DNA from: Macrostomum lignano
Lineage: Eukaryota
Reading direction: 5' to 3'
NCBI GenBank assembly: GCA_002269645.1
Contig: NIVC01001894.1
Location: forward strand, 62,001-126,000
DNA: 64,000 bases
The position numbers and the translations under genes were made by a program. A model generated the notes under the pieces. It ran no database searches. It saw only the letters and a list, made by a program, of their open reading frames with translations, and was not told where the DNA came from. The stretch's first letter is position 1; every line of letters begins with the position of its first letter. Below are positions 291-50,722 of this stretch, one piece after another.

Positions 291-462
291 AGCGTAAAAT
301 AGATCAGCTATCGATCTTTTATCGTCAATATGTAAACAGCTTAAAAGTACATAATAGATTTTCGAAATCTATAGTAGTATTTAGCGGATTGCTAATCTAT
401 TCTGCAATAGTAATGCTACTGGTAGCTGTATGAGCAATTTTAAGAACCAATCAACTCCACAG

Positions 463-3400
463 GTGGCAATGGAGCGCGACCTGCTTGACACCAGGCTAAG
501 AGAAGCGCAGAATGCTCAACGTGCGCTCACTGGCGAACTGGGCGATCTGCACGATCGCTATGACGAGTGCCTCGGCATGCTGGACGAAGCGCAGCAGGAG
601 ATTCGCGCGTTAAAAAAGCGCCAAAAATCGTTGCGACTTGGCGCCGCCGGTGCTCATCTATTGGCTCCGCCGTCTGCCGCGGCCGCTACCACCGCCGACG
701 CTTCCTCTGCGGCCGCTTCCGGGGCCCGCCTGTTGCCGATGCACGCACCGGCTGTGCCGCCGCCGTATGAGCAGAGCCTCATGAGCGAGCTGGAGATGAG
801 CTCGGCTAGGGTCGGCGGCGATCATCGGATGTGAGCGAGCTTTTGGGGAGTTGCTGGGACTGCTGTTATAAAGTACACGGGGCTCTGATAAAGCTTGTGG
901 AACTCTATGGAAATTCTAAAGATGTCTTTAGGATTGTCTGATTTGTCGGTAAATAAGTCAATGAGATTCTCTGATTGGTTGGTGAATAAGTCAATGGGAT
1001 TCTCTGATTGGTCGGTGAATAAGTCAATGGGATTCTCTGATTGGTCGGTGAATAAGTCAATGGGATTCTCTGATTGGTCGGTGAATAAGTCAATGGGATT
1101 CTCTGATTAGTCGGTGAATAAGTCAATGGGATTCTCTGATTGGCCAGCAAAGAAGAAGCCAGTAAAATTTGTGCCATCCCACCCTCCGCAGCGCGGACAA
1201 TCTCAAGGCCTTGGAGACGGTCAAGATAGTCAAAAGTGCCGCCGCCCAGAGCCTGCACGGCAGAGCTGGCATCAGGCCGACAGGCGCTGCCGCCGGCATA
1301 GCCCTCACCAGCACTAGCTTAGGCTACGCCACTACTCTCCGCGATCCTGTTGTTGCTATGGCGTCATTGGTTACACCTGGCGACGAGGAGCAGCGCAGCG
1401 GGGCGGCCAGTTCCGGCTATCGAGACGAATGCCTGTCAGAGTGAGTTTTTTAGGGAGGCTGCTTGGGGATCAGCATTCATATTGATGTTGGCTTTGCGCT
1501 GATTGAGATATTCATATTTGTGTCTTCAGGTTTTCTAGTGACGTTTAAGATTTCCAAAAAATGATAATTTCCTTACAAGCTGCACATTCCCCTGCAAACT
1601 GCACATTCCCCTAAAAACTGAACATTCCCCTGAAGACTGCACATTCCCTGAGCTGTAGATTCTTCAAATTGCACATTCCCTGAGCTGAACATTCTTCAAA
1701 ATGCACATTCCCTAGCTGAACATTCTTCAAACTACACATTAACTGAGCTGAACATTCTTTAAACTACACATTCCCTGAGCTGAACATTCTTCAAACTACA
1801 CATTCCCTGAGCTGAACATTCTTCAAACTACACATTAACTGAGCTGAACATTCTTTAAACTACACATTCCCTGAGCTGAACATTCTTTAAACTACACATT
1901 CCCTAGCTGAACATTCTTCAAACTACACATTAACTGAGCTGAACATTCTTTAAACTACACATTCCCTGAGCTGAACATTCTTCAAAATGCACATTCCCTA
2001 GCTGAACATTCTTCAAACTACACATTCCCTGAGCTGAACATTCTCAAACTACACATTCCCTGAGCTGAACATTCTCAAACTACACATTCCCTGAGCTGAA
2101 CATTGTTCAAACTACACATTCCCTGAGCTGAACATTCTCAAACTACACATTCCCTGGGCTGAACATTCTCAAACTACACATTCCCTGAGCTGAACATTCT
2201 CAAACTACACATTCCCTGAGCTGAACATTGTTCAAACTACACATTCCCTGAGCTGAACATTCTCAAACTACACATTCCCTGAGCTGAACATTGTTCAAAC
2301 TACACATTCCCTGAGCTGAACATTCTCAAACTACACATTCCCTAAGCTGAACTATTTTCAATGTAGCAGTAAGAATTACAATTAGATTTTTTTGAATTAT
2401 TTCTGTTCCAGTCGCATGATGAAGCTGGAGTCTTATCTTACTCAGCCGTGGAAGTCTCTATTCAGGTTGGGCATAATTAAGCTTAGTTTTGTCTAATTTA
2501 CTTTAACAAAATAAGACTTGAATTCCAACTCAGGTGTAGATATCATCGGTGGTGATCTGAGAAATCTAACTGGCAGAATTTCAATGGAATTTCACTTGAT
2601 TGCGAGCTTAAAAGTGGTGACTTTTGTTACTCATTATCACGCTTTGGGTCGGCTTCCTCTGATCTTTCTTTAAGTCTTGATCAGTGTTAACTTCTTTCGC
2701 TAATCTCAACCTGTTTGAAAAACTTGCGCTAACAGAATCACTAGTGTCAAAATATACTAGCATTTTGCACTATTCGCGTGATTTGTTATCATAAATAACT
2801 CTTAAATTCTCTCCCTGACCCTATTCTCTCCCTGACCCTATTCTCTCCCTGACCCTATTCTCTCCCTGACCCTATTCTCTCCCTGACCCTATTCTCTCCC
2901 TGACCCTATTCTCTCCCTGACCCTATTCTCTCCCTGACCCTATTCTCTCCCCGACCCTATTCTCCCTGACCCTATTCTCTCCCTGACCCTATTCTCTCCC
3001 CTGACCCTATTCTCTCCCTGACCCTATTCTCTCCCTGACCCTATTCTCTCCCTGACCCTATTCTCTCCCTGACCCTATTCTCTCCCTGACCCTATTCTCT
3101 CCCTGACCCTATTCTCTCCCTGACCCTATTCTCTCCCCTGACCCTATTCTCTCCCTGACCCTATTCTCTCCCCTGACCCTATTCTCTCCCTGACCCTATT
3201 CTCTCCCCTGACCCTATTGTCTCCCCTGACCCTATTGTCTCCCCTGACCCTATTCTCTCCCCTGACCCTATTCTCTCCCTGACCCTATTCTCTCCCCTGA
3301 CCCTATTCTCTCCCTGACCCTATTCTCTCCCCTGACCCTATTGTCTCCCCTGACCCTATTGTCTCCCCTGACCCTATTCTCTCCCCTGACCCTATTCTCT

Positions 3401-6400
3401 CCCTGACCCTATTCTCTCCCTGACCCTATTCTCTCCCTGACCCTATTCTCTCCCTGACCCTATTCTATCCCTGACCCTATTCTCTCCCTGACCCTATTCT
3501 CTCCCCTGACCCTATTCTCTCCCCTGACCCTATTCTCTCCCTGACCCTATTCTCTCCCTGACCCTATTCTCTCCCCTGACCCTATTCTCTCCCCTGACCC
3601 TATTCTCTCCCTGACCCTATTCTCTCCCTGACCCTATTCTTTCCCTGACCCTATTCTCTCCCTGACCCTATATTAAGAAAGCCTTGTTAAATTATAATGA
3701 ATCGGCGTTTATTGAGTTTTGAGAAAGATAGCAAAAGAAAGGGTTAACATGGAATTTAGCACTGGCGTAGCTCAAACAAAACTTAGTGGTACAGGTAAGG
3801 GAGTCGAAAACCATAGAAATAATTAAGAAGTCTGTTATAGAAAATTCTGGAAGGAAAACTTGGATTCACTTACTATAAATATAAAGTTGACTATTTTAAA
3901 ATAAACGATTACTTATAACATCTTTAACACTCCCACTTAATGTTTAGCTTAAAAACTAGTGCATCTGGTACAAACAGTTCATATTGTGTCTTGAATAACA
4001 AAGTTAGATAAAGAGTTAGCAGTTACATTAACGAACAGGAATCAGTTCCTTGAGCACTTGAAACTTAGCATTAGACAGTGCTTTAGTAAGAATGTCAGCG
4101 ATCATCTCCTCTGACGGACAGTAAATTAGCTTTAAAGTTCCGCCGACCAACTTCTCACGCACGAAATGGTGACGGATATCAATGTGCTTAGAACGACTGT
4201 GGAAGACAGGATTCCTAGCTAGAGCAATACAGCCTTGATTGTCTTCTAGGATAGTAACGTATTTGAGACTTTCTACGCGAAGATCTAGTAGTAACTGTTG
4301 TAACCATGTGGCTTCTTGGGTAGCAGCTGAGAGTGCCATGTACTCGGCCTCCGTCGTCGATAAAGCTACAGTTTGTTGCTTCTTGCTACTCCAGCTAATC
4401 GGACATTCAGCCAACTTGAAGATGTATCCGGTTGTAGAACGTCGGTCATTGTGATCTCCAGCCCAGTCTGCATCGGAATATCCAATTAGATCGATTGCAC
4501 GCGAGTCCTTCTGAAAAACCAATCCTGATGAAATGGTTCCCTTTAGATATCTCAGGACACGCTTCACGCCACTCCAATGCTGTTCAGTTGAGTCTGAGCA
4601 ATATTGCGCGAGAACTCCCACTGCAGATGACACATCTGGTCCTGTAGCTAGTGCTGCGTAGTTTAGACTTCCTACTGCCGCCTGATACATAGTCTTGTCC
4701 ACCTTTGCATCACAGGTCTGTGTAGTGTAGAACTTGACACTTGTGTCCACTGGTGTTGATACCGGTTTGCAGTCCATCATGTTGAATTTAGAGAGGATGG
4801 TATTTAGATACCGCTCTTGGTTTAGAAACAATGAACCATTCTTCCAGGTAGCTTGAATTCCAAGAAAATAGTGAAATTCGCCTAGATCCTTCATCTTAAA
4901 TTTAGATTGCAGTTCTTGCTTCAGTACGGGCATGTAGTCGTCAGATGCTGTTAATAGAATGTCGTCCACATACACACCGATCGCAGATTGAGAGTTAGCA
5001 TAGATACACGGTTCTGACTTTGCCTGCACTAGATTAAGACTTAAAAGTTCATCATGTAGAGTTTGATTCCAACACCTAGGAGCCTGCTTGAGTCCATATA
5101 GACTTCTTTCTAGTTTGCATACTAGTGTTTCCTTGCCTTGAACCACAAATCCTTCCGGTTGTTCCATGTAAATTTCTTCGTCTAGTTTGCCGTTTAAAAA
5201 TGCTGTTACGACATCCATCTGGTGAATTTTCCAATCTCGTTGAACTCCAACAGCCAGTAGAGTTCTAATTGATGTAAATCGAGCTACTGGTGCATACGTC
5301 TCCTCATAATCTACTCCATGCTCTTGAGAGTATCCTTTGACTACCAATCTTGCTTTGAATCTGTCTACTGAGTTGTCTGCCTTATACTTGACACGAAATA
5401 CCCACTTACAGCCAATAGTTTGACGTCCTTTTGGTAGCTCAACCAGTTTCCATGTCCTGTTCTCCATCAGTGACTCGTACTCTGCATTCGCAGCCTCTTG
5501 CCAGTCTTTAGAGAATGAGCTGTCCAATGCTTGCTGTAGAGTTTTCGGTTCGTCAATTTGTGTTGCGACGGATGCCACGTACCTGTCAACGGGCTTCTTC
5601 TCTCGAGTTGATCTCCGAACTTCTTGCTTGTCGACAGTTTCAGGAACACATTTGAAATCAGACGATGCTGGTTCGGTACCTGCATTCAGTTGAAGTGTCT
5701 CCTGCTTCTCCACTAATTGCTTTACGAAGCACGACTCTTGGAACGTTACATCGCGACTGACGAAAACTGATCGTGTTTGGAAATCAAAACAACGATATCC
5801 TTTTGAGGTTTCCGAGTATCCAATAAATCTGACTTCCCGAGCTTTTGAGTCAAACTTGTGACGTTTCTCAGCTGGAACATGCGCGTAGGCAACGCATCTA
5901 AATACTCGCAAATGCTGAACACTCGGCTTGCTGCCGGTCCAAATTTGATATGGTGTCGCTTTGTTGACTGCACTTGTTATTGATCGATTACGCAGATATG
6001 CTGCCGTAGAGATTGCTTCTGCCCAGAATTCCTTGCCAATATGAGCATGTGCAATCATTGTTCGTGCTGCCTCCACCAAGGTTCGGTTCATTCTCTCGGC
6101 TACTCCGTTCTGTTCAGGAGAGTGTGGGACAGTAGTCTGGTGAATGATTCCGTTTCGGGCACAGAATGCCTCAAATTCTCCCGATGTATACTCTCCACCA
6201 TTGTCAGTCCGAAAAATCTTGATAGACTTGTCTGTTTGATTTGTGACGAGAGCCTGAAAGATCTTGAATTTTTCTAAGACTTCTGACTTACTTTTAATGA
6301 AGTAAACTGAGCAATAGCGCGAATAGTCGTCAATAAATGTGACAAAATACTTTGATCCTCCAATTGACGTAGTTTGCATGGGACGTTTGCATGACGTAGT

Positions 6401-9400
6401 CTCGTGACAGATGCAGTCTCGTTAGTTAGGTTAAAGCCTTTCAATTTGTACAGTCTGCCAACTTTTAAAGCTTTTCCAACAATCTTACCAGTTGCGCTCA
6501 AAATCTGACACTTGTCGTCGCTGAATTGTACACGGAAGCCTTTTCTTGTAACTGCTGATACTGAGAACAAATTCTGTTCCATAAGTGGTACATATAGAAC
6601 GTCGCTCAGCTCGCACAATTTCTTACCAGAACCAGTATTGATATACAACCGAACGGTTCCCTTTCCAGTGGCTTCGAGCTTATGTCCATCTGCTAGCGAA
6701 ATGTTCTCCAGTACCGAAAAATCTTCAAATTTCTCAAAACTTGTCCGATCATTAGTCATATGATTCGTTGCGCCTGAGTCCACAATCCATGTACTAGACT
6801 CGTTAGCTGTCGATGATGTGCCCATAGACAACGCCGGAAATGCAGAATCTTCCTCATCTAAAGCTGAAAAGTCCTTTAAGTCCTTTAAGAAAATGAGGCT
6901 TACCAGGGTAACATCAATGGTAACACCAACACCGTTGAAATCGTTTTCGAGTGAGTGCTTACAAGACGCTTCTAAATCTTACTATTTGAACTTCCTGTTG
7001 TTGGTTTACATTTGTTAAATACAACTGTTTAAAGCAGGACTGAGAACTATTTCTCAGGCCTCGTTTGGGGACTGAGAAATGGTTCTCAGTCCTCCTACAA
7101 CCGATAAATTACCATAGAAGTTGTTGTTCCTCGGGAAAAGGATGAGACTGCGAAAGAGGCGAGAAATGCACTTTCTGTAGGTTAAGTCTTTTGCTGGGGC
7201 GTCTGCAATCCTCGCCTGATGCCTTCTGTTGGATTTCTTCAAATCCTGTGGTCTTGAATTTGTGTTCGATCCACCTGTCACTGAGAGGCTATTCTTGAAT
7301 TTGTAACAGTGCTTCTTTAGGTGACCAGGCTTATTGCAGAAAAAACATACTTTTGGTATGACACTCTGGTGCTGTTGCCTCTTGAATCCAACCAGAGCCT
7401 TTGAATTGCTGCTAGGTTCACAGCTTTCCTGTTCAAGTCGTTTTGACTCCTCGTGCAAAAGCCGCTCGAGTACGAAATTCATCGTCAAGTCGTCCGCTCG
7501 CGATTCCAGGGCAGTAATCAACCCGTCATATGACTTCGGCAAACTGTTTAGCAGAATCGTGACTTGATAGTCCTCGGGAACACCTGCCCCGATAGCCGAC
7601 AGTCGTTTGACGATATCCTTGAACTGATTAACATGCTCCTGCATGGATGCACCTTCCACCATCTTGAGCGCTTGTAGTTTCCGATTAAGAAACAATTTAT
7701 TTGCTAGCGAACTCCGCTCGAAATATGCTTGAAGCTTATCCCACGCTTCCTTCGGAGTTTCTGCATCCTCAATTAGATGAATTTGACTATCCGCAACAGC
7801 CAATACGATAGTCGCTAGGGCTTTGTTCGCACGCCGCTTGAACTGAACTTTGACCTCGTTGGTCGCGTCCTCAGCAAGTGTCTCTGTACCATCAACAACT
7901 TCCCAAAGTTCTCGCTCCATCAGGACGTTCTTCATCTTGAACTTCCAGACAGTGTAGTTGGAACTATCCCACTTCTCAACCAGTAGTTTGGCATCGAAAG
8001 ACATCGTGTCGATCCACCAGCACAACTGGACTGCTGAGCTTGAACTTTCTAAGAGACGGTAGAGCCTGACAATCACACCGACTGACGCACTGCCACTGAA
8101 GCAGCTTTATTGTTCACACTGCAGTAGATCACAGTGGAAGGGCGCAGGGCCCATAACCTATTAAGAAAGCCTTGTTAAATTATAATGAATCGGCGTTTAT
8201 TGAGTTTTGAGAAAGATAGCAAAAGAAAGGGTTAACATGGAATTTAGCACTGGCGTAGCTCAAACAAAACTTAGTGGTACAGGTAAGGGAGTCGAAAACC
8301 ATAGATATAATTAAGAAGTCTGTTATAGAAAATTCTAGAAGGAAAACTTGGATTCACTTACTATAAATATAAAGTTGACTATTTTAAAATAAACGATTAC
8401 TTATAACATCTTTAACACCCTATTCTCTCCCTGACCCTATTCTCTGCCTGACCCTATTTTCTCCCCTGACCCTATTCTCTCCCTGACCCTATTCTCTCCC
8501 CTGACCCTATTCTCTCCCCTGACCCTATTCTCTCCCCTGACCCTATTCTCTCCCCTGACCCTATTCTCTCCCTGACCCTATTCTCTCCCCTGCCCCTATT
8601 CTCTCCCCTGATCCTATTCTTTCCCTTAACCCTATTCTCTCCCTTAACCCTATTCTCTTTCCTGACCCTATTCTCTCCCCTGACCCTATTCTCTCCCTGA
8701 CCCTATTCTCTCCCCTGCCCCTATTCTCTCCCCTGATCCTATTCTTTCCCTTAACCCTATTCTCTCCCTTAACCCTATTCTCTTTCCTGACCCTATTCTC
8801 TCCCCTGACCCTATTCTCTCCTCTGAGCCTATTCTCTCCCATGACCGTATTCTCTTTCGTCCTCTTTCCCAGGTATTTTCATTTCTCTCTTCACTTCCAA
8901 TCTCGCTTCCCTCTCTCCCACTTCTTTCTTGTCTTCACCGCCGCTCACACCTGTCGACTCTCGGCCACCGTCACGCAGGTCGCTAAGCGTTGGCAATCTG
9001 AGCGAAGCGAACGCCGGCTTCGCCGACATGAACCTGGTGATGAGCAAGCTCAAAAAGGAGCAGGAGCGACGCCGGAAAGCTGTCACTCAGCGTTACAGGT
9101 AAGACGATAACGTGCAAGTTTCAGATTTGCCAATGTTTAATTTAAAGTTTAGTTTCACTTAAAATAAACTTTATTGGGACCTCGTCAGAGGCAGCTGTCT
9201 CGTCTCTCCTCGAGTGGCTGCTTTGAAAGGGTAAATCAACTAAAATAATTATCTTTTTTGTTATATTACTCAGCCACTAAGCTACTTATAGTAGTTTTTT
9301 AATTTGACCCTCAATTGGTAATTAGGTCAAGAATTTTGCAGATTCTATCATTGCGCTTTCCATTCTCTTCAATCGGTTGGTTGATGATACCCGGGTGTGC

Positions 9401-12400
9401 AGAAGTGCGCCAAAAACTCTATTTCTTGTTTGTCTTAAAAAAGCGAAAAAATGACCCGGAGTCGAACCCGCGACCTTCGAACCCCAGGTACGCATCGGAG
9501 CAGTCGGCCGGCTCCACTAGTCCTCTGTCGGCTTCGAATCCCGAGCTGAGCTCGGCCGGCTCAAGTCCGCCTCGCAACTCGTGGGACGTGGCCGCCGCGG
9601 AGCCCGAGGTTGACGAGCCGCATGACGGACTGCCGCCGCCCCAGCAGCAGCCGCTGGCTCAGCTGCAGCATCATCATCAGCAACAGCAGCGGCAGCCGCA
9701 GTCCTCGCTGCAACAGCATCTGTCGCTGCCGAAAGCGGCCAGCCGCATCGGGATGGGCATCGCCCCGGAGAAGCTGCAGCTGGTGAAGCCAATCGAAGGC
9801 TCCTTGACGCTGGCGCAGTGGCGTAGGCTGGCCACGCCCGGCCTGCATGCTGTTGTTGTCGGCGACTTGCCCGGTGTTCAAATACGCGGCGGTCTGGAAG
9901 GCGATCCGATGCTCTGCGAACTCATGGGCGATGCGGTCTGCGGCCAGGGGGAGGCAGATAAGGCGCAGCTCAGTCTCAGCGACATCGAGGAGGACGGTGA
10001 GGAACAGCAACAGAGGCTTGCATATCCATGAGGATTCTATTGAGATCCATGAGGATTGTATTGAGATCCATGAGGATTCTATTGAGATGCATGAGGATTG
10101 TATTGAGATCCATGAGGATTGTATTGAGATCCATGAGGATTGTATTGAGATCCATGAGGATTCTATTGAGATCCATGAGGATTGTACTGAGATCTATGAG
10201 GATTGTATTTAGATCCATGAGGATTCTATTGAGATCCATGAGGATTCTATTGAGATGCATGAGGATTGTATTGAGATCCATGAGGATTGTATTGAGATCC
10301 ATGAGGATTCTATTGAGATGCATGAGGATTGTATTGAGATCCATGAGGATTGTATTGAGATCCATGAGGATTGTATTGAGATCCATGAGGATTCTATTGA
10401 GATCCATGAGGATTGTACTGAGATCTATGAGGATTGTATTTAGATCCATGAGGATTCTATTGAGATCCATGAGGATTCTATTGAGATGCATGAGGATTGT
10501 ATTGAGATCCATGAGGATTGTATTGAGATCCATGAGGATTCTATTGAGATCCATGAGGATTGTACTGAGATCTATGAGGATTGTATTTAGATCCATGAGG
10601 ATTCTATTGAGATCCATGAGGATTGTACTGAGATCTATGAGGATTGTATTTAGATCCATGAGGATTCTATTGAGATCCATGAGGATTGTATTGAGATGCA
10701 TGAGGATTCTATTGAGATGCATGAGGATTCTATTGAGATCCATGAGGATTCTATTGAGATCCATGAGGATTCTATTGAGATGCATGAGGATTCTATTGAG
10801 ATCCATGAGGATTCTATTGAGATCCATGAGGATTGTATTGAGATCCATGAGGATTCTATTGAGATGCATGAGGATTGTATTGAGATCCATGAGGATTGTA
10901 TTGAGATGCATGAGGATTGTATTGAGATCTATGAGGATTGTATTGAGATCCATGAGGATTCTATCGCGGCACACCAAAATTCTAGCGAGATCCGTTAAGA
11001 TATGTAATTGCAGCATTACCTACATGCAAAATGCCTGTTACATTACATTACCATTACCTACATTAAATGATTAATCATACTTGCTTACAAGCTCACCATC
11101 AATCAAAACGAAAAAAAACTCGCAGACGATTTCTGCCGCATCAAGTTCAAAGACGCCGAGGCCTCCGGCCTGACCTATACATACACTAACTCGAAGGTGA
11201 TGCACCCGACTGACAGCTATGAGTTTGCCGCCCCGGCTCCACCTGTCGCTGCCACCTCGCCTTCGGCTGCAGCCGCTGGCAGTGCATCAAAGATCGCTGG
11301 TGGCTCCCGGTCGGCGACCACGCTTGTGCCTGACGTTTCCAAGTGAGTGACGCTTCGGTGTGCGTGAGACAGGTAGACTGAGAGAGGGGGTGAGACAGGT
11401 AGAATGAGAGAGGGGGGGGTTAGACAGTTAGAATGAGAGAGAGGGGGTGAGACAGGTAGAATGAGAGAGGGGGGGGGGTTAGACAGTTAGAATGAGAGAG
11501 AGGGGGTGAGACAGGTAGAATGAGAGAGAGAGAGAGAGAGAGAGAGGGGTGAGACAGGTAGACTGGGAGAGTGGGTGAGACAGGTGATAATGAGGGAGGC
11601 AGAGTAGCGTCAAGAAATTGGAGTCTGTTGGTCTCAGAAAGGTGGGGAATTCAAACCTGTCAGTGACTAGAAAGCAACTCCTCAGTGTCCTGATGTTCCA
11701 TTATAATTTCTGCAGAGCTCCGCCCGGCAAGCAGCCACCATTTGCTTTGCAAATCGCCCGCACCCCGTCTAAACGGTGGCCGCAAGACGACGGCACGTCG
11801 ACATTTTCGTTGAGCTTCGGCCTCGCCGACGTACTGCGTGAACGCGGCGTCAGGAGCGCCGCCCCCGACGACATCGCCGCCAGCGCCTCGCTGCACCGGC
11901 TGCACCAGCAGCAGCAGCAACTGCCGCGGCGGCAGCGGTCCCGCCAGCCGAGCACCAGCGCCGGCCTGCCGTCGGCAGACGACGAATCCGCGTCTAGACA
12001 GCGATCGGCGTCGTCGTCGGCTTCTTCGACGGCGGACAGCAGCAACGCGGCGGCCTCGGCGTCGGCCGAAGGCGAGGAGGATGACGAAGCGACGCCGACG
12101 CACGACGGTTGGTTTTTGCCGACGCTGGGCGCCGGCCTGAGCGCCACCCTGCGCAACCTGCTGCAGGGCGTCAGCCTGGTCGCTGGCGGCCCCATGCCGC
12201 CGTCGTCCTCTTCGGATTCGTCGACCTCTTCGGCCAGCCCGCCGCTGCCGCCGGCCACCATCGCCGGATTGAATATCTTCGGCCAGACGACGGTCGAGAC
12301 TTCTTCGACGGCTACCGCCTCCGCGGCGCCTGGCGCAGTCGGCGGCGGCGGCGGTATTGTTCATCGGGTGTCGTCGCTGAGCCCGGCTGACCTGGAGCCG

Positions 12401-12409: not shown

Positions 12410-12534
12410 TTGACTTGAGGAGTCATGAATTAAAAAAACTGGCTTACTGACTTCTAAAGTAAAAATACACGCTCTAGTTACACAAAGTTAGAGAATCGAA
12501 GTTTCTCTTAATTCGGCCTAAAAACGATTTTTAT

Positions 12535-13020
12535 TGGATCGGCCTTCAAAAATCAAAGCTGCCTAAATCGGCCTTAAAAACTGAAATTACCTAAATTTAC
12601 CTTCAAAAATCGATATTATCCTAATCGGCCTTCAAGAATCTAAAATACCTAAATCGGCCTTCAAAGATCAAAATGACCTAAATCTGCCTTTAAGAATATA
12701 AAATACCTAAATCGGCCTTTAAGAATATAAAATACCTAAATCGGCCTTCAAGAATCTGAAATACCTATATCGGCCCTCAAAGATCAAAATGACCTAAATC
12801 TGCCGTTAAGAATCTAAAATACCTAAATCGGCCTTCAAGAATCTAAAATACCTAAATCGGCCTTCAAGAATCTAAAATACCTAAACCGGCCCTCAAAGAT
12901 CAAAATGACCTAACCTAAATCGGCCTTCAAAAACCGAAATTACCTAAATCAACCTTCAAAAATTAATATTACCTTAATCGGCCTTCAAAAGTCGAAATTT
13001 CCTAAATCGGCCTTCAAAAA
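12535..13020. repeat. 29/30-bp degenerate minisatellite downstream of the TRAK stop
   Basis: Unit approximately AATCTAAAATACCTAAATCGGCCTTCAAG. Confidence 0.9.
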
Positions 13021-14364
13021 ACTTCCAGTTGATTTGCTGGTTGGAGTCGTGCAGGATAAGATTTATTGAGACCAAAGCTCACTTTTATTTTTCATCGCTT
13101 AGTTTATCGGCTTTTAAAAAACTCCTCACAGTTTGCGTTTCTTAATCTCGTTCATGTTTTGTAACTTTTTTTAGATTATTTTTTATTTAACTCTTAACTT
13201 AGATTAGGGCGTCGCAGCGCCGCGCTTTGCTGTTTGTTTTATCGTAATCGATTGGCGCGTATTTAAAATCTATAGTTTTCATATGCGTTCTATTTTAGCC
13301 AGTTAATTAGTAGTGTGTATAGGACATGCGCAGGCCCAGTATGTATAGTGAGACTTAATACTAGATGTAAATAGCCTGTCCATTGCAATTTAATACCTGT
13401 GTTTACTCTTAGAATCATGTAAATTTGCAATATGCTTCCGAGCAGATGCATTGCCGCAATCCTGTATGATTATTACTATTGGTGATCTCTTAAATGTGCG
13501 AATCAGGGGTCGGCAGCGAACTCCGGCCCTCGGGTCTTTTTAACCTTCACTGTGACACTCTAATTGTGTGACACTAAAATTGCGACATTTCTCGTGCTAT
13601 GTGACAGATTTTACGGTTCAGATCTGTATTCTTCTACTTTTCTCAGTAGTTTTAGTAAACTTAGTAAGTCTTAGTAAACTTAATTACGAGGTCTTTGTTT
13701 TATCGCTTGTTCGCTCTAGATCGACGCATCTTTGTTTTTGATGCTGATTAAAAAAAGCTTTTGCCTTCCAGAATCCTGAGTTCTTCTCTGCGTTACTTCA
13801 AGTATCTTGATGATGCTCTTTCGTGCCGCAACTATTTTAACAGCCAACCATTACATTTGACTAACTGGATATTTACTACTCAATATTAGTAAAGACTAAT
13901 CAGTAGTGTTTGCTGCGCGCTGTGTTTTAGATTTAATTGGCCAGTATTCTGTTATGCTTTGTAGATTATGGACAGACGTTATAGCTTAATTTTGTGAAAA
14001 CTTTTGAGTCATCATTGCTGTTTTGCTTTGTAAGCTACTCTTAGTAGCACCAAAGATATCTAACGGACGCATCTTGATCAGTGTTTTTAATCGCGTTTCG
14101 CTCATGGCTTCGTATAGAAATAGCTTAATTTGCAATAAATACTACTAACGTGTATTCGCTGCTTCTGCACTTATATTTTTAAGACTGCACTGAACTCACT
14201 GCTGTGTGAGATTGGTGAATCATATATTTTAGTCGTTGCACACTTGCCAGCCTAGCAAAGTAAAAGTTTCAAGTTGAGTCTAATTGTAGCCTAAATATTT
14301 CACTCATTTTTGTTGAGCTGCAGGAGTTCAACTGACATTATAGAGCATCACAATCGTCATTAAT

Positions 14365-27426: not shown

Positions 27427-28764
27427 GAAACACTGAAGCGTGTTGAAGCGGTTAACACTGGATTTTAGTGTACATACGAGCGTATCATATAGTCATGGCT
27501 TGAAATAGTAACAAAAATCGTTACAATGCACACATGTATCACTCATTAACAGCATCGGTTTATTGAACGTTAAATGCATGAATAAATGTGCAGTGCATGC
27601 ATGTACGCGCGGGTTAAAAATCAGCATAGACTACTACACTTTAATCTGAATTAAACGGAACTTTAATGAACGTACAGTTAGTCTAGCGGTGAAGGTTATT
27701 CCGTCTATCCTACCAGCCAAGAGATAAGAGACACACCCCTTGGTGATTTGGGATGAATATACTTATAATCATTAAATTGTGTTCGGTCTTAACGATCCAT
27801 GCAGTGTCCAGACCGCTGCACATTGTTGTTGTCGGTGTGCATGAGTCTTCTCTAGTGCCCTTTAAGGCGTTAAGGCTGAACTATATGTGCTACAATTCAT
27901 GTTATTGAACAGATGAAAGCTAGCCTAGACGTGAACAGACTGAACTGCTAATGCAGCGACGTGGGTTCGAATCATAAGAGTGTAATTTTTTTATTTAAAG
28001 CTTTTTTAATGTCCAGAAAACTTAATAGAACTTAATGTGAAAAATAAAAGAAGCGTCATGTAAAACATACGAGAAGTGAACCTCACACTTCGTAAAAAAA
28101 GTGTCATGTGACAAATAAAAGGAGCGTCATGTAGACATACTGTAAAATAAGCGTCATGTAAAAATGTGGGATGTGAGGGCTCACTGGGGGATCGCTAAGA
28201 TATCAAAGCTGAGATGTCAAGGCTTACGGGGGGGGAATTGCTGAGATGTCAAGGCTTACGGGGGGAATTGCTGAGATGTCAAGTCAAATTGCCTTGCATA
28301 TTCAAAACTTTATTAGTTGAGTACCTTCATTGTCATTCGATGAAAGTTCTATAGTGCGGAAATTTCCAAATCACGCCATCCTGCAGCGGCACCCTTTAGC
28401 TGCCAGCTACTTACTTGTTGTGCAGGTCGAAGTGGGCTATAGTACTACTGCACTGAAGGAAAATGAGTGCATCAAATTTGCATCCAATTAGAGTTTGGAT
28501 GACACATTGGGGTGGGGTGACACATCCAAAGGGAGCGCATAAAAATGGGGTAAAAGGGGTGCTCAGAAAGGTATTTAAAAGCCGACAGCCGCGCCCTGAT
28601 GCTCAGCAGATAGCTTTCGCAAGCAATAAAAACTGGTTGAAACTTCACTGTTTACCTTGGACAGGCCAGACGGTAAGCATTCTGGTTTATAACTGTATGA
28701 GCTAAATATGCCAAATCTCAAACTTTTTCTCGGAAACTTGTTTTTCAGAAAGCAAATCTTCCCG

Positions 28765-30389
28765 ATGGTCCGCTGGGTCCCAATCCTCGTACTGCTGTGC
28801 GCCATCCTGCACGCTATGCGGCCCGTGACCGCGGCTGTGGACCAAACTCTGCAGCCGAAAGCTAAAGGGGCCGACGTGGTCCGAGCCACAGTTCGCAAGA
28901 TCCGCAACAGCTGCATCTTTCCCAACGACTTAGGATTTCTATTGCGCGTCGCATATGTGGATTCGAAATTCGGCCTCAACGCCAACACGTTTCGTTCCGA
29001 CGCTGATGGTTTTGGCAAAGGCATCTGGCAGTTGGACAAGATCGGCTTCGACGACACCAAACTCGGAAGCAGTACAAAAAGAAACTTGGTGAAGGAGAAG
29101 TTCGGAATTGACTGGACAACTATGACATACGCATCCGCTAACATGAACGTGCCGCTCTACAACGCTCTTGCTGCGCGACTGCTGCTCTCTCGAAAACCGG
29201 AGGCGATTCCATCTGGCATTGAAGCGCAGGTCGACTATTGGAAGACCTATTACAACAGTGGCGCTGGCAAAGGCTCTGTAGATAAATTTATCAACGACGT
29301 CAAAAGCATACAGCCTTGCAGTACCGTTGGTGCCGACCTGCTATTCATCCTGGACGCTAGCGGCAGCATCGGATCCAGCAACTTTCAGCTCATGAAGCAG
29401 GTGCTGATTGCAGTTGCTAATAAATTATCGATTGGTCCCGCGGCTACGCAGGTGGCTGTGATCACGTTTTCCAGCCGAATAAATGAGACGATCGAATTTG
29501 GCCAACATTCAACACTGAGCTCTTTGACTTCGGCCATTCAAGCGCTGTCATACGTAGGCGGAGGCACGTACACAAACCTGGCATTGGATCTCGTAGGATC
29601 CACGTTCCAGTCTGCTAGACCTCTGAAGGAAGGCTTTCCCCGGCTGCTTATCGTGCTGACAGACGGTGGATCGAGTGACCGTGAAGCCACTCGCCTGGCC
29701 GCGAACAGACTTAATGCGTACAGCTGGCTTGAGCGCTACGCCGTTGGCATGGGATCGGGCGTAAATAAGGATGAACTGGAAACCATTGCGTCATGCTCGC
29801 ACGTTTATATTATACAATCTGTCAGCGCTATCACCGGCCTGACGGACGATCTTTACGAGCTCGCCTGCCAATCGTCGGTTGCGCTGCCTACGGACAATGC
29901 CGGCTTCGCAACCATGTCTGGAACGCTCCCACCGGGCACGCCTCGGAATGTGCGCGACACGGCGGTCTCTAGCGCTATCGGAAGAACCTACGCTCTGCAA
30001 GTGATTTCCGGTCGAGCTAATCTCTACGTGTCCCTCGGCATGGAGAACCCGAGCTCCGCTGTCAATGACTACTCAGCGGAGGCGACGCCAAGCCGATTGG
30101 AGTCGTGTTTGTCAGCTCCGCAGACCTGGCAGCCTCGTCCGCTCCGCTGAGCAGGCGCAAACGTGAGCTGTCCAGCAGCAGCAGCAGCAGCAGCTCCAGT
30201 ACCGTTCTGTACCTGTCGATTGTACCCGAAGAAGACAGCGGGTCGGTGATGTACACGCTCGAAGCTCGCGATGGCGACACTCGCTCGCTTTATCAGAATT
30301 CGATCGCCGGCGGGCCAACATTGCTGCACTGGCCGAAGCTGGCTCTGCTCGCGGCCATGGCGATTGGCGCGATGGCGCTGTTTGATTGA
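28765..30389 (+). CDS. Secreted, probably GPI-anchored protein: lysozyme-like N-domain + vWA + C-terminal domain; one frameshift near 30090
   Basis: Signal peptide MVRWVPILVLLCAILHA; intact MIDAS (DASGS, GGT, TDG); hydrophobic C-terminal tail in the 30105-30389 frame; 5'-UTR intron 28675-28748. Confidence 0.8.
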
Positions 30390-31832
30390 GTCGCTTCAAC
30401 TGGAAAGTGACAAGTGACGCTGTTTATACTTTAACTTTAATATTCCAGAAAAATTAGCCACACGTACTTTTATCGCAAACTAACACTAAGCTTGTTATTC
30501 AGATGAAAACTTAGCAACAGAACTAACAAAAAACTAACACAAGTGCCCGTATTTTCTCATAGCTGCGACGACAGCCGACCCGCAGCCAGCCAGAAAGAGC
30601 AGAAGACATGCCCATTTTCCTCTGACTAAATTTTTCATTATATATATTTTTTTTCAAAATTCTCCACGAACTCTAAAACAAATATTTGCTTTCGGTTTCT
30701 AACATTTACTTTTCCAAATTTTTTAACACTGCTTTACGAATCTTATTAAAACAAAGCGAACGCAGAAAATATTTAAACTTTATTTTTTTATTGACGCAAA
30801 AATTAAACTAAGCAAAAATGTACTGCACCTAATTTTTCATATTTAAAAAGAAACAATGAATAAATATATGAATGAATGTATTTTGGGATTAGAAAAGTAT
30901 TGCACCTTACCAAATAATGCTTTTTATAAATATCGGGAATCAACGGAAATAGACGCACTCGTGCACTTTTACACGCGTGAGCAAAAAGAAAAATGACTAA
31001 CCCTCACTATGCAGGAACAAAAGCTCAAATTATCATGTACCTTACATACTCGTACATGTATACATATTGCTGTGCTTAAATTATTTTAACAGCATATGGA
31101 CAATCATCTCCAATGCAAGTCCTACATGAAGGTATTAAAAAATGCCAACTGGTAAACACACAATACTAATTACTTTCGAAACATATCGGCAATAATAACT
31201 ATGTTCCTTTCTGCAGTACTGCACTTCACTTAGATGCAGGGAATGAAATTCGGAAATCGCTGACAAGAAAACTTCTGTACAGTGCGACAGGAAAATATCT
31301 ACTTTCGATACATATCGTCATTTACCTATGTTAATTCTACACCCACGAGTAGGTCTTAACTGCTACATATACATACGATGTAATTTAGCTTACAATGGCC
31401 GTCCGGAAAATCAATCCAAAATAGGAGCTACAACTACTGTCTGAAAATTTCCAGAATAAACAATTTCGATACATGTCGGAGAGCAATAAAAATCGCCCCA
31501 ATTTTATACTAGATGCTCACACACGCAATAGGTCCTGAAAATCAGACAGCAAAGTTGACTAACCGCCGTCAGAACAAAATCCCTCCGGCAACAAATAAAA
31601 GTCGCCACTCCCTACATCAGGGGCCGCGAAGCCTCTCTAAGACCCTTGGGTCCTTTGAAACTTCGCAATAGCAATCCGGCCTGCTGAAGGTTTGTGTCAC
31701 TTCTCAGCTCTCTTCCCTCTAATATCCTCTCTCTTATCTCTTCCCTCCCCTCTCTCTCCCACTCTGGCCAGCAGTCATGCGCCAGATTCTCTATCTGGCC
31801 CTTGAGGTACAGAAAGTTTGCCGACCCCTGCC

Positions 31833-34800
31833 CTAAACGCACGCGTAGGTCCTGGGCGCAACGCAGATAATTTGACTGTCCTCCGCCATTCGGTCCAGCA
31901 GGCGGCGCAGCCCGGCCTCCGTCAGGCCCGGGTAGCAGCCGCGCCGCTCCCTCCGCAGCCGGCCCAGCAAGGCCAGCTCACTGACTCCGCCGCCGCTGCC
32001 CGTAGGAGCCGCCGCCGCCGCCATCGACGCCGATGCTCCATCTCCTCCTGTTGAAGCGTCTCGCAGATGGCGCAGCGTCGCCACAATGTCCGCCCGAAGT
32101 CTCGAGTCGGCCTCGCACAGCTGGTACTGCTGGCGGCCAGTGTCCTCGCATAGCCAGGCCCGCAGCTGGCCGGATGCGACCAGCGGATCCAGCAGCCCCG
32201 ACTTGATCGCCTGCTTGGTGCCAATCGACGACAGCCAGTTGGCGCTGAGCAGCAGATCCGGCAGAGTGAACTGGTGCAACCGGTGCGCGCGCAGGTGCTC
32301 AACCAGGCGCTCCTGAGACTGAGTCTCCTGGGAGATTGTGTTTTCGTTATTGAAACTGACTTTAAATCAGTTAGAGTTGCTTGTTTGGCGATAAATTAAA
32401 ATAGAAAACTGAGAATCCGAATTAGGGCTTCGACGTGTTATGAATTTCTGTACACTAAAGCCTAACCTCCTCTAACCTCAACACCCAGCTTATTTCTGTG
32501 TTTCATCAGAGAATACACTTACTGTGTTTGTTACATTTTAATGTCGAAAAAGTTGCATAATAATGCCCGATACATACGGTACAGCCGGGGCGTCGCCACA
32601 AAGGGAAAGGGGACATGTCCATGTCTTCATGTCTTCAGGACGCCTAAATGAGTGCCTGCGGCGCCTAAATGAGTGCCTGCGGCGCCAAAATGAGTGCCTG
32701 CGGCGCCTAAATGAGTGCCTGCGGCGCCTAAATGAGTGCCTGCGGCGCCAAAATGAGTGCCTACTGTGCCAAAATGAGTGCCTGCGGCGCCAAAATGAGT
32801 GCTTGCGGCGCTAAAATGAGTGCCTGCGGCGCCAAAATGAGTGCTTGCGGCGCTAAAATGAGTGCCTGCGGCGCCAAAATGAGTGCCTGCGGCGCCTAAA
32901 TGAGTGACTGCGGCGCCTAAATGAGTGTTTGCGGCGCCAAAATGAGTGCCTGCGGCGCTAAAATGAGTGCCTGCGGCGCCTAAATGAGTGTCTGCGGCGC
33001 CAAAATGAGTGCCTGCGGCGCTAAAATGAGTGCCTGCGGCGCCTAAATGAGTGACTGCGGCGCCTAAATGAGTGTCTGCGGCGCCAAAATGAGTGCCTGC
33101 GGCGCCTAAATGAGTGTCTGCGGCGCCAAAATGAGTGCCTGCGGCGCTAAAATGAGTGCCTGCGGCGCCTAAATGAGTGCTAACAACACCAATTCCCAAA
33201 ATAATGTAGGAATTTTTTCATGTAGAATTCCTGACATTGTCCCCCATCATAAAAGCCGTTTTGATGGTTCCAGGCTAATTAGTAAATGTGACGAGGTTTT
33301 GTTCGAAATTTAAATTCATATTGGCTTCTCCGTTGCGTTAATTTCGGCCCTGTAATCTGATTTGATAGCCTGTCTACTAACGGTAGTATATACCGGTATG
33401 GAGATACGCAGCTATACATGTGAGCGAAGCGGCATCACAACGTTTTCGCATCTCTTTCACTCTGTAGTAACGGAAAAAGACTTAGGTTCGATTTTATTGA
33501 GAAGCCAATAATGCTGCAAGTATTGTATAAGCGAATGCAACTCAGCGGCAAACGCGTTCCACTTTCGCGCATCTCTTCGTCCAATTCTCTCCTATTAGGG
33601 CTCGCCCGAAGGCACAGAGCGTGTGTGCTGAATAGCCTTAGCGTTGGCGTTGTGACAGGATGCCCGCAACCCTCCTGCGAGCATTCATGTACATGTATAT
33701 TTATCTACAGGCCGAGTTCTCACTCACCCGGTGCCTGGCCGCCTCAGCCAGGCGAACCTGCCTGCTCAGCCCGTCGGGCAGCCGCAGCCGCAGGATGTAG
33801 CCAAACTGGCAGCTCGGATCGGCCAGCTGGGCCAGCCTGCTCAGCCTGAGCAGCTCCTCGTCAGGCTCGGCCATCCGATGATAGCCGCAGCTGAGCTCCC
33901 GGCTGCCGCGGAATTCCCGCACCAGGCCCCTGGCGTGCAGGCTGAGGCCCGGCCTGGGCGCCGGCTGGGCCGCCTCGGCCGCCTGCGTCTCCGCTAGCAG
34001 CAGCTCAGCCAGGCTGTCCTCAGCACCCAGCGTTGTCAGGCCGGCCAGCGCGGCTGTTGCGACGGCGCTGCTATCGCCGTAGGAACTGCCAGTCGTGGTT
34101 GCTATGGCAACCGCGTCGAGCTGCCTGGCCGCTCGGAAACTGTGCAGCGACGGCGGCGGCGGCTGCCGCGGCTTCCACAGGGTGCAGCCGATTGAGCCGG
34201 TACCGTCGTCAACTGCAAGGAGGAAGATGGGACGACTGCACTCAGATACTGGCAGTTTGGGAAGGGGGGCAGGGTATGATTCAGATAGGGCTGATGGCCA
34301 ACTCCTAATCCTCAGTGAGTCGCTACGATCACATGACCCTTTAGTGAGTCGCTACGATCACATGACCCTTTAGTGAGTCGCTACGATCACATGACACTTT
34401 AGTGAGTCGCTACGATCACATGACACTTCAGTGAGTCGCACCTACCCTCAATATTTCAGTGAACCGCAACTATGCCAAGATGAATCAGGGAAGTCGCCAC
34501 TATCCCCTGACACTAGTGGGCTGCCACTATTCCGGGACTCAAAAAGCAGCAACTACACCAACTACTAACAAGTAGCATAACTACGAGTAGCAAAAAAGTA
34601 TCTTTTACGGTAAATCCAAATTGAACGTGAGACAGGGCAGAGGTGTGCACTATTATTGCTAATTATTAAAACTCAGCTGTGCGGGTGTGGCACAAAAACT
34701 TCGCTCACATCTGGTTTGGCCCACCGCCCCCCCCCCCTAGTCCGCGCGAACTCACCCAGGCACTTGAAGTAACCGTCAAACTCCGTAGCCGAACGGCACA

Positions 34801-36410
34801 GCCCGATGACGTCAAACTTTCTGACCAGCTTTCTGCCTACTCGATATGAGACTCCGCCGTCTATAGCGGGTAGATGGAGAGATGGAAAGAGATAGGAATT
34901 ACATAATGAGTAAACAATTTTCTCTTAAAGCAAGCGGAGCTTTTAAAAAGAGCGCGGCGGAGGAAGAGACTGATATTTGGAGGGCAAGAAAACTTTTTGG
35001 AGAAGTACTTTTAACTTTCTAAGCTAGAGATAGTCAACAATAAGTAGCTGTTTGATAAGCTTGCTGAGCAGGTGAGATAGAGTGACAGCGGCGACAGGTA
35101 AAAGACTGGTAGATGGCGTAGAAGAGTAAGTGCGACAGGTAGAAGGTGTACAAGAGCAAGGAAGACAGGTAGAGGGCACAGAAGAGAGAGGGAGACAGGT
35201 AGAAGGCACAGAAGAGAGAGGGAGACAGGTAGATGACGCAGAAGAGAGAGGGAGACAGGTAGATGGTACAGAAGAGAGAGGGAGACAGGTAGATGGCACA
35301 GAAGAGAGAGGGAGACAGGTAGATGACGCAGAAGAGAGAGAGGGAGCCAGGTAGAAGGCACAGAAGAGAGAGGGAGACAGGTAGAGGGCACAAAAGAGAG
35401 GGAGACAGGTAGATGGCACAGAAGAGAGAGGGAGACAGGTAGATGGCACAGAAGAGAGAGGGAGACAGGTAGAGGGCACAGAAGAGAGAGGGAGACAGGT
35501 AGAGGGTACAGAAGAGAGAGGGAGACAGGTAGAGGGCACAGAAGAGAGAGGGAGACAGGTAGATGGCACAGAAGAGAGAGGGAGACAGGTAGAGGGTACA
35601 GAAGAGAGAGGGAGACAGGTAGATGGCACAGAAGAGAGAGGGAGACAGGTAGAGGGCACAGAAGAGAGAGGGAGACAGGTAGATGGCACAGAAGAGAGAG
35701 GGAGACAGGTAGATGGCACAGAAGAGAGAGGGAGACAGGTAGAGGGCACAGAAGAGAGAGGGAGACAGGTAGATGGCACAGAAGAGAGAGGGAGACAGGT
35801 AGAGGGCACAGAAGAGAGAGGGAGACAGGTAGATGGTACAGAAAGGAGAGGGAGACAGGTAGAGGGTACCGAAGAGAGAGGGAGACAGGTAGAGGGTACA
35901 GAAGAGAGAGGGAGACAGGTAGATGGCGCAGAAGAGAGGGAGACAGGTAGAGGGTACAGAAGAGAGAGGGAGACAGGTAGATGGCGCAGAAGAGAGGAAG
36001 ACAGGTAGAGGGCACAGAAGAGAGAGGGAGACAAGTAAATGACGCAGAAGAGAGAGGGAGCCAGGTACATGGCGTAGAAGAGAGAGGGAGCCATGTAGAG
36101 GGCTTAGAAGAGACTGCTTGTCACGCCGGCTGCGGGTCAACTTTCGCCTCGATTTTCTATAGAGCCTAAAGCCCACACTGAAAGCTAAAAAGCGAAGAGA
36201 CAGACGGATAGATGGCGCATAGAAACTAAAAAAAAACGAGCTAAAAAGTCTATAATGCCATTAGGCACGCCGCTAGCACTCACCGAGAGTGGACACAGCA
36301 GGTGCACTCAAGATGGCGCCAATGCAGACTGGCAGGTGCTGGCAGCAGGCTGGATCCAGCTGGGCCGCCTGCTGCTCCGCTGTAGGCTGGCCGTCATCGC
36401 CCAGCTGCAT
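31833..36410 (-). CDS. STN1: CST complex subunit STN1
   Basis: Phase-consistent exons 36284-36410, 34756-34860, 33728-34212, 31833-32327. LDP..H motif, FDVIG, VDDGTGSIGCTLWK, GLVREFRGSREL (OB fold), winged-helix-like C-terminus. Confidence 0.8.
32638..33178. repeat. 21-bp minisatellite in STN1 intron 3
   Basis: Unit GCCTGCGGCGCC(T/A)AAATGAGT. Confidence 0.95.
34313..34440. repeat. 29-bp minisatellite in STN1 intron 2
   Basis: About 4 copies of AGTGAGTCGCTACGATCACATGACCCTTT. Confidence 0.9.
35095..36110. repeat. 30-bp minisatellite in STN1 intron 1
   Basis: Unit GAAGAGAGAGGGAGACAGGTAGA(G/T)GGCACA. Confidence 0.95.
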
Positions 36411-49940: not shown

Positions 49941-50722
49941 ATGAGAATTGAATGTAATTATAAAAATAAATAAAATGCATAAAAAGACGCAGAGCTTTAG
50001 TGCAATAGCTATATAGAATGGAGTATAAAAAGTGGCATATCTCTAATTATAAACTTCAGCCCAAATGAATAAGACACATTTATTGAGACAGAGCAACAGT
50101 GTATCGCAGTGCAATAAAAACCTACTGAAAGGAATCGAGGGGCAAAATAAAAAAATAGATAATAATGTTGAAAATACAAATTAGGGTTATTGAAGCCGAT
50201 TCAAAGTGGGCCTGAAAAATAGGAAAAAATTGTTTCTATAAAAATAGGATAGAACAGCATCCATACGATATGACTATCAATATATCGATCATGTTAACAC
50301 AGCCTTAGTTGCAATGTGACAGAAAAGCTAGTTTTAATCAATTATAAGCCTTTAATAGCATGCATGTAGCCTATCAAAGATAGAGATTATATTAAATTAA
50401 ATCGACATAATCCCCGGAGCGCAACAACGAAGTACGAGCGTAATGTACATTTGCTGTGTCCTGACTAAGGTAAAAAACCAGTGTTTTTACTAATAGTAGA
50501 GTATTGAATACATTTTAAGCATTTTTCTTATATTTCTACAATTAGTAGAAAGTCTATGAGAGCTCATTATATAAATTTCATACGTGTAATATTTGGCTAT
50601 TTTGCTATTTATACTGTATGTAAAGCGCCACAACGAGAATTTCGCGGCGATTTATCTGTTAGAAGGATTAGTCTCCTCTAGGCCTAGGCCTTCTCTAGGC
50701 ACAATTTAGTCACGCGATACTA

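Follow-up and report, generated by a model that had tools for sequence, protein, structure and literature searches.

The window, a 64,000-nt stretch of Macrostomum lignano DNA (contig NIVC01001894.1, positions 62,001 to 126,000), contains on its minus strand a Ty1/copia LTR retrotransposon with two direct LTRs. Our Pfam analysis gave the minus-strand domain order Retrotran_gag_2, Pol_BBD, rve, SH3_retrovirus, and RVT_2, and both marks of the copia type, a copia-type Gag and the order protease, integrase, reverse transcriptase, were found. The element and its flanks are laid out as follows:

457-621, plus strand: host exon with the end of a HAP1_N domain (TRAK/Milton-like), above the Pfam cut-off, upstream of the element
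3671-3929, minus strand: 3′ LTR, bordered by the target duplication CCCTA (3666-3670)
4028-6379, minus strand: integrase core, SH3-like domain, and reverse transcriptase (rve, SH3_retrovirus, RVT_2), in a frame different from that of the protease
6274-6882, minus strand: native frame after the insert (KDFSALDEED...) into the protease, with DSGAT and a Pol_BBD domain; the link to Gag is lost
7054-8076, minus strand: Gag reading frame, with ATG at 8004-8002, a Retrotran_gag_2 domain, and a CCHC knuckle
8159-8417, minus strand: 5′ LTR, with the 5-bp target duplication CCCTA adjoining it (8418-8422)
9765-9803, plus strand: weak match to the Pfam Milton domain over its final 13 positions (PEKLQLVKPIEGS), at 15.9 bits below the cut-off of 22.3, downstream of the element

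The 5′ and 3′ LTRs show 2 mismatches over 259 positions, which implies that the copy is young. A 17/18-nt minisatellite surrounds the element. An exact look-up of its ORFs in a 15-billion collection gave no match. Three copia families have been described in M. lignano, and for two of these the copy number is 13-16 (PMC12801592). Judging from the HAP1_N exon at 457-621 and the sub-threshold Milton match at 9765-9803, both on the plus strand, the element probably lies antisense within an intron of a TRAK/Milton-like gene. The plus strand of the segment described below is thus sense to that gene, as a preliminary description of this DNA had stated.

Upon analysis of the reading frames, we found that the native portion of Gag stops at about 7182 and that 43 further codons lie in an insert, ending at TGA 7056-7054. 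A second lesion is present at about 6380-6400, where the zinc-finger part of integrase is absent and the frame changes. With the Gag stop in the insert and the integrase lesion, the copy lacks the intact Gag-Pol frame of an autonomous element. The insert occupies the linker between Gag and protease, where the following features were mapped:

6876-6882, no strand: left target copy TTAAGTC, extending to TTAAGTCCTTT (6876-6886)
6883-7181, no strand: insert proper, 299 nt, GC 0.41, with bounds fixed by the empty-site family member A0A1I8J229
6951-7037, plus strand: putative 87-nt intron of the preliminary description (GTGAGT...AAAGCAG), motifs present
6972-7112, minus strand: alternative intron-like reading of 141 nt (GTAATT...TTTAG, in frame), a control and not a feature
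7033-7096, no strand: near-perfect hairpin with 28-nt arms and an 8-nt loop (-45 kcal/mol, z = -9.25)
7182-7188, no strand: right target copy TTAAGTC, extending to TTAAGTCTTTT (7182-7192)

The preliminary description had suggested that other copies of the element be compared. The one further M. lignano copy of the same copia family examined, UniProt A0A1I8J229, shares 95% identity across the protease and lacks the insert. Its alignment begins exactly at the insert boundary, reading ...APAKDLKDFSASDEED..., and its linker carries only one LKD (...APAKDLKD|FSA..., AKDLKDFSA). This single LKD implies that 306 nt were added, namely the 299-nt insert and a 7-nt TTAAGTC duplication, rather than the 297 nt put forward earlier. 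Deletion of 297 nt does restore the gag/protease frame as claimed, giving AKDLKDLKDFSALDEED, and deletion of 306 nt likewise mends it. TTAAG was found at 6876, 6885, and 7182, and minus-strand GACTTAA on both sides of the segment, as described; the bounds, however, are not a bare TTAA but the 7-nt TTAAGTC duplication at the empty-site junction. The extended direct repeats (6876-6886 and 7182-7192) are identical at 10 of 11 positions and exact over 7 nt. Some 7-nt direct repeat is expected by chance somewhere within 370 nt; the weight of this one comes from its coincidence with the empty-site junction. A messy 9-nt tandem repeat (AAGTCCTTT twice) flanks one junction. A canonical intron that precisely removes the insert was rejected, as GT/GC...AG ends were found in 0 of 12 equivalent 306-nt deletions, which means that the lack of the insert in A0A1I8J229 cannot be an artifact of splicing by a gene predictor. 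In distant relatives the gag-protease linker is short and continuous, and in the closest metagenomic relative it is unbroken at ∼50 aa. The insertion in the gag-protease linker is real and foreign to the copia element, and the earlier claim that a foreign segment breaks gag-pol is borne out by the 95%-identical copy without it.

We next consider what the insert contains. Stops occur in all six frames. None of 4821 candidates in a six-frame protein search reached E ≤ 10, a negative weakened by the fact that the tool also missed the 95%-identical family member, and Pfam gave no domain match on ten frame pieces. Rfam at E ≤ 10 placed no family above threshold and yielded only sub-threshold, generic miRNA-hairpin matches. 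The best of these for the hairpin was mir-384, whose 31.3 bits lie below the gathering score of 72, so that it does not qualify as a member of a miRNA family. The hairpin consists of two 32-nt units, each with the 18-nt palindrome CTGAGAAnnnnTTCTCAG (7040-7057 and 7072-7089). Besides this dimer of a palindrome-bearing unit, the insert holds a 12-nt tandem repeat and an AT-rich core. This content would resemble the non-coding, repeat-rich DNA of Macrostomum rather than exons.

Hallmarks of a transposon class (inverted repeats, a tail, TG...CA ends, or a pol III head) were absent from the insert. Matching the two ends as inverted repeats gave a top score of 14, a value reached by 204 of 500 shuffles. 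Neither an A-rich nor a microsatellite tail lies beside the duplication (the plus strand ends ...CTTTCTGTAGG and the minus strand ...CCTCATTTTCTT), and a tRNA scan together with Rfam at E ≤ 10 found no tRNA-, 5S-, or 7SL-derived head. A solo LTR was rejected for want of TG...CA ends, a Helitron because the ends do not match, and a hammerhead- or SL-RNA-related insert because Rfam gave no match. The palindromes were also rejected as heat-shock elements, since their GAA/TTC spacing is 4 and not 2. TTAA at both junctions is shared with piggyBac-type miniature elements, and the insert end TTAA-CCTACAGAAAG presumably recalls piggyBac ends, which we treat as a lead only; unlike such elements, the insert has a duplication of 7 bp (TTAAGTC) instead of the 4-bp TTAA and no matching inverted repeat at its other end.

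No further copy of the insert was found in the 64-kb window by blastn at word size 7, mismatch-tolerant pattern searches, or nhmmer, and there was no match in a homeologous 21.6-kb M. lignano locus. The copy search thus covered ∼85 kb of Macrostomum DNA, which rules out only very high copy numbers. With no second copy in that span, a mobile element is no more than a candidate source. Scanning metagenomes for the hairpin arm gave no match, while a degenerate form of the palindrome gave six unrelated simple hairpins, a chance-level result. A scan of IMG/VR for the terminal 19-mer of the insert was likewise without a match, and a bacterial promoter/terminator scan, irrelevant here, found nothing. 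The literature search gave nothing on MITEs or SINEs in Macrostomum.

According to the preliminary description, the element had taken up part of a host gene, two exons around an 87-nt intron, in antisense orientation, so that the intron would survive retrotransposition. The motifs are as described, with GTGAGT at 6951 and AAAGCAG at 7037. The same frame is open on both sides, the plus frame from 6877 reading ENEAYQGNINGNTNTVEIVF, then (E)TENYFSGLVWGLRNGSQSSYNR, TAA at 7105, and then ITIEVVVPREK. The middle is AT-richer (GC 0.33 at 6951-7037 vs 0.41 and 0.46 in the flanks), and the segment is foreign to the copia family. The supposed coding-like exons, however, hold only 19-21 and 23-24 open codons before a stop, the second ending at TAA 7105. 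When we asked for at least 20 and at least 22 codons with a GTRAGT donor, a criterion slightly stricter than the observed reading, which falls short of it, 25 of 1000 shuffles and 6 of 217 real 292-nt window tiles passed (∼2.5-3%). Supposed exon 2 (7038-7180) is largely the palindromic hairpin, the base of which includes the proposed acceptor, and no protein or Pfam match was obtained in any frame. In addition, the minus strand offers an equally good reading, since removal of the 141-nt pseudo-intron takes out all five in-frame stops. We consider a captured gene piece improbable, with its exons at chance level. That same minus-strand reading is the basis of a further proposal, in which the insert is a native, intron-bearing spacer spliced from 7112 to 6972 on the copia strand, so that unspliced RNA would give Gag and spliced RNA Gag-Pol. 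It draws on an insert length that is a multiple of 3, on 43 and 31 edge codons open in the Gag frame, and on the clearance of every in-frame stop by a single intron. Against it, 5% of shuffles and 15% of window tiles allow a comparable rescue, the edge peptides have no matches, and the linkers of relatives are short. The native gag-pol spacer, named earlier as the alternative that would overturn the gene-capture reading, is itself largely refuted by the complete lack of the segment in A0A1I8J229, and we regard it as barely credible. AT-rich, repeat-rich flatworm DNA lets splice-like readings be built on either strand of 300 nt, which calls for caution; the splice-like motifs on both strands may nevertheless reflect a pre-mRNA or a genic non-coding source for the insert.

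A different origin is template switching, in which TTAAG(TC) microhomology would have let reverse transcriptase leave the copia RNA for an RNA packaged along with it, from the cell or from another transposon, and later return. A single step would then account for both the insert and the short duplication, with the lesion afterwards carried in a non-autonomous lineage. Consistent with this, the junctions are short homologies with the messy 9-nt repeat on one side, and a young copy with two large lesions fits an origin at the RNA/cDNA stage or inheritance. Moreover, the copia-sense insert begins CCTACAG| and ends |GTAAGCC, resembling an exon with intron stubs. These splice-like ends are at chance level, though, a clean 7-nt duplication is equally expected from a staggered chromosomal cut, and both a donor RNA and a second insert-bearing copy are lacking among the sequences compared. 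We therefore rate template switching as unlikely, if plausible. Use of the insert by the host was also weighed, either as a poison exon of the TRAK-like gene (7038-7180, previously proposed to be in phase with 2412-2465) or as a hairpin source of small RNA from the TRAK intron. The insert plus strand is sense to the gene, the hairpin is strong (stem ∼27 bp), and the arithmetic holds, as inclusion of the 143 nt after 2412-2465 shifts the frame and puts TAA 7105 in frame. It is not specific, however, because nearly any 143-nt intronic piece would bring a stop. Furthermore, the pyrimidine tract of the acceptor is poor and the acceptor itself lies in the hairpin base, the mini-exons on either side (2412-2465 and 8979-9097) are only putative TRAK, and the Rfam miRNA score is far below threshold (31 bits vs 72). 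Such use is very unlikely. We give a slim chance to a broader reading in which a copia lineage template-switched a host pre-mRNA or hairpin ncRNA and spreads it in trans, or in which the hairpin yields small RNAs or a cryptic exon in the TRAK-like intron.

Taken together, the reading as a captured gene fragment is not supported, and the insert is probably an ordinary nested insertion. On balance, we favor 6883-7181 as a secondary, non-coding insertion of 299 bp in the Gag-protease linker of one Macrostomum Ty1/copia copy, with a 7-bp TTAAGTC duplication. Its integration would have brought the target duplication with it, for a gain of 306 bp altogether. The insert is a lesion and not a device; the Gag frame runs through the 43 foreign codons and halts at the TGA. 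Because of this stop, protease, integrase, and reverse transcriptase can no longer be made as a Gag-Pol fusion, and combined with the loss of the integrase zinc finger this leaves the copy dead, or at best open to mobilization in trans. We infer two possible routes of arrival: a short non-autonomous or 5′-truncated retroposon may have integrated, or a staggered break may have been filled with repeat-rich non-coding genomic DNA. Either route fits a duplication of 7-11 bp made by a staggered cut and the absence of terminal inverted repeats.

Nested insertions that disrupt LTR retrotransposons are well known from the layered retrotransposon blocks of maize and from many animal genomes. As in those cases, the polyprotein is interrupted by foreign DNA that carries a target duplication of its own, and the LTRs of the host element stay near-identical; unlike the usual nested insertion, the insert fits no transposon class and has no second copy in ∼85 kb. 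A 5′-truncated non-LTR retroposon or SINE, which integrates by target priming, would share the size of ∼0.3 kb, the lack of inverted repeats, and the variable target duplication of 7-11 bp, which starts A-rich on the copia-sense strand. The internal stem-loop also resembles those of some LINE 3′ regions. In contrast to SINEs and 5′-truncated LINEs, the insert lacks both a tail (A-rich or microsatellite) and a pol III-type head, and it has no Rfam match. In gene capture by LTR retrotransposons, of the maize Bs1 type, and in retroviral transduction, captured genes are normally sense, intron-free, and recognizably coding. The insert is similar in that foreign sequence sits in the internal region of the element, possibly via template switching at short homologies, and differs in having no coding similarity and stops in all frames.

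For annotation, the copia copy should be marked as defective and 6883-7181 as a nested insertion with no family assigned, and the exon-intron-exon pattern should not be used as evidence for a gene. The significance goes little beyond annotation. If many copies do exist genome-wide, the insert would represent a new, small Macrostomum repeat family with a distinctive double-palindrome hairpin; if instead there is a single genic donor, it would be a rare animal case of sequence capture by a copia element.

The segment under study lies within a minus-strand element whose LTRs are 259-nt direct repeats (3671-3929 and 8159-8417) with two differences (99.2% identity), each flanked by the 5-bp CCCTA (3666-3670 and 8418-8422). 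The element sits in a 17/18-nt minisatellite (window 2745-3682 and 8394-8839; unit about CCCTGACCCTATTCTCT) that stays in register across both sides of the CCCTA duplication. Between the LTRs, the minus strand codes for Retrotran_gag_2, a CCHC knuckle, Pol_BBD (protease, DSGAT), rve, SH3_retrovirus, and RVT_2, which is the Ty1/copia order. Three Ty1/copia families are reported for M. lignano, with 13 and 16 copies in two of them (PMC12801592). A second lesion, at about 6380-6400 on the minus strand, has removed the zinc-finger part of the integrase (NNSIDLWHQHYGHL... in the M. lignano relative) and changes the frame: the M. lignano family member P0080 has ASVARNNSIDLWHQHYGHL where the window has ASVTR and then the frame change. 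The Pfam rve match begins at profile position 21, and PF13976 was not found in the element.

The Gag frame (8076 to 7054) is recognizable as far as ...APAKDL, continues for 43 more codons, and ends at TGA 7056-7054. It reopens at about 6979 and continues ...KDFSALDEEDSAFPALSMGTSS...WIVDSGATNH. As the preliminary description held, removing 297 nt (TTAAG to TTAAG) regains one continuous frame, and so does removing 306 nt (TTAAGTC to TTAAGTC); every motif that it listed was also found in place. To distinguish an insertion from a native spacer, we compared this linker with those of related elements. From the CCHC knuckle to DSGAT it is short and continuous in distant relatives (30-38% identity) and in L002, the closest metagenomic relative (Gag 62% identity). 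An exhaustive representative search, in which the query was the protease ORF plus its extension into the insert (window:6277-6978:-), returned one protein at 95% identity, P0080 (UniRef100_A0A1I8J229, M. lignano, 2331 aa, a chimeric gene model), whose alignment starts at query residue 31, the exact end of the insert-encoded residues. Its junction reads ...RRHQARIADAPAKDLKDFSASDEEDSAFPALSMGTSS... with a single LKD, that is, an empty site. The 306-nt deletion can be placed at 12 equivalent positions in the window, none of them bounded by GT/GC...AG, and therefore P0080 cannot be a filled copy spliced by a gene predictor. The segment is thus no feature of the family, and the native-spacer alternative is refuted. 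The event thus added 306 nt, the 299-nt insert (6883-7181) and a 7-nt duplication:

Target duplication flanking the insert
6876-6882 and 7182-7188, TTAAGTC, 10 of 11 positions identical when extended over 11 nt

The approximately 300 N-terminal residues of P0080 correspond to copia Gag-protease, contain internal gaps, and carry DRGAT instead of DSGAT; unrelated low-complexity sequence follows. L002 (JGI metagenome 3300040801, contig Ga0450804_0983569, positions 1000-1480), which is the element's closest relative outside Macrostomum, is itself defective: the frame changes between its Gag and its protease, and its protease is joined directly to integrase sequence.

The insert had been described as an exon-intron-exon gene fragment captured antisense, a reading that finds no support beyond chance. 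With a concatenated six-frame query and all 4821 word-sharing candidates scored, no protein similarity was seen at E<=10; the same word-indexed tool had missed the 95%-identical P0080 in another search, making its negatives weaker than apparent. Pfam gave no match in the insert, which has stops in all six frames, and the plus-strand "exons" run for about 20 and 24 codons before a stop. A slightly stricter exon-intron-exon pattern, which the observed reading lacks, occurs in 2.5% of shuffled sequences and in 2.8% of the 292-nt tiles of real sequence. All five stops disappear if an in-frame "intron" of 141 nt is read on the copia-sense strand, from GTAATT at 7112 to TTTAG at 6972; comparable rescues arise in 5% of shuffled sequences and 15% of tiles. 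Further readings run from CCTACAG| to |GTAAGCC on the minus strand and from GG|GTAACA to TTTCTGTAG| on the plus strand. At least four mutually incompatible readings are possible on 6883-7181, both strands considered:

Splice-like readings of the insert
6951-7037, plus, splice-like reading
6908-7180, plus, splice-like reading
7112-6972, minus, splice-like reading
7174-6904, minus, splice-like "exon" with AG and GTAAGC borders

With several incompatible readings fitting equally well, no single one counts as evidence. At 7037, the proposed acceptor falls inside the base of a hairpin, and "exon 2" is mostly hairpin.

On the plus strand, HAP1_N is matched at 457-621 with a score above the Pfam cut-off, and the end of the Milton domain at 9765-9803 with a score below it; these two matches place the copia element probably antisense within an intron of a TRAK/Milton-like gene. 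Mini-exons at 2412-2465 and 8979-9097, putatively part of TRAK, have AG/GT borders and an open frame when joined. The suggestion that 7038-7180 (143 nt) could serve as a poison exon is arithmetically correct, in that its inclusion would shift the frame and bring TAA 7105 in frame. Almost any intronic piece of similar size would do the same, and the interpretation is not supported beyond chance.

A 480-aa VWA-domain ORF (window 28708-30150) is 89-94% identical to M. lignano BOX15_Mlig019589g1, and window 22-36 kb is collinear with M. lignano contig NIVC01002150.1 at 88-97% nucleotide identity. These matches indicate that the window comes from M. lignano itself, as a duplicated or alternative copy of this region, or else from a very close relative. 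In the VWA-domain gene, at about 30100-30390, a frame change near 30100 is required to match the C-terminus of P0070, its paralogue in M. lignano, which tblastn aligns as two pieces in separate frames, reflecting either a pseudogenized duplicate or an assembly indel error. The window also holds at least ten minisatellite arrays (unit 17-40 nt):

Minisatellite arrays
1-333
886-1188
1601-2415
9877-11000
12527-13063
32627-33199
35011-36176
43577-44800
48703-49980
55395-56066

Many yield long spurious ORFs on both strands, and some adjoin or sit inside apparent host-gene exons, e.g., the RhoGAP ORF 44905-46755. Their abundance is consistent with a genome in which LTR retrotransposons reportedly make up 21% and simple and tandem repeats 15% (PMC5730564).

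As for the insert itself, its GC content is 0.41 (core 0.33), and it contains a 12-nt tandem repeat (GGTAACATCAA / GGTAACACCAA) and a dimer built from 32-nt units, both of which carry an 18-nt palindrome, CTGAGAAnnnnTTCTCAG, that occurs nowhere else in the window. The two units fold jointly into a stem of ∼27 bp (-45 kcal/mol, z = -9.25). The insert has no terminal inverted repeats, A-rich or microsatellite tail, TG...CA ends, or tRNA, and no above-threshold Rfam family; blastn and nhmmer found no further copies in the window or in L001, the homeologous M. lignano locus. The segment may have arrived when a short retroposon or a stretch of non-coding DNA integrated by target priming or at a staggered break, which would fit the 7-11-bp duplication and the lack of inverted repeats. 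The main rival, template switching during reverse transcription, would also account for the presence of two large lesions in a copy with such similar LTRs. The segment is a real, ordinary nested insertion. This copy of the element has lost function as a result: its truncated Gag carries 43 foreign codons at the end, and Pol is uncoupled from Gag.
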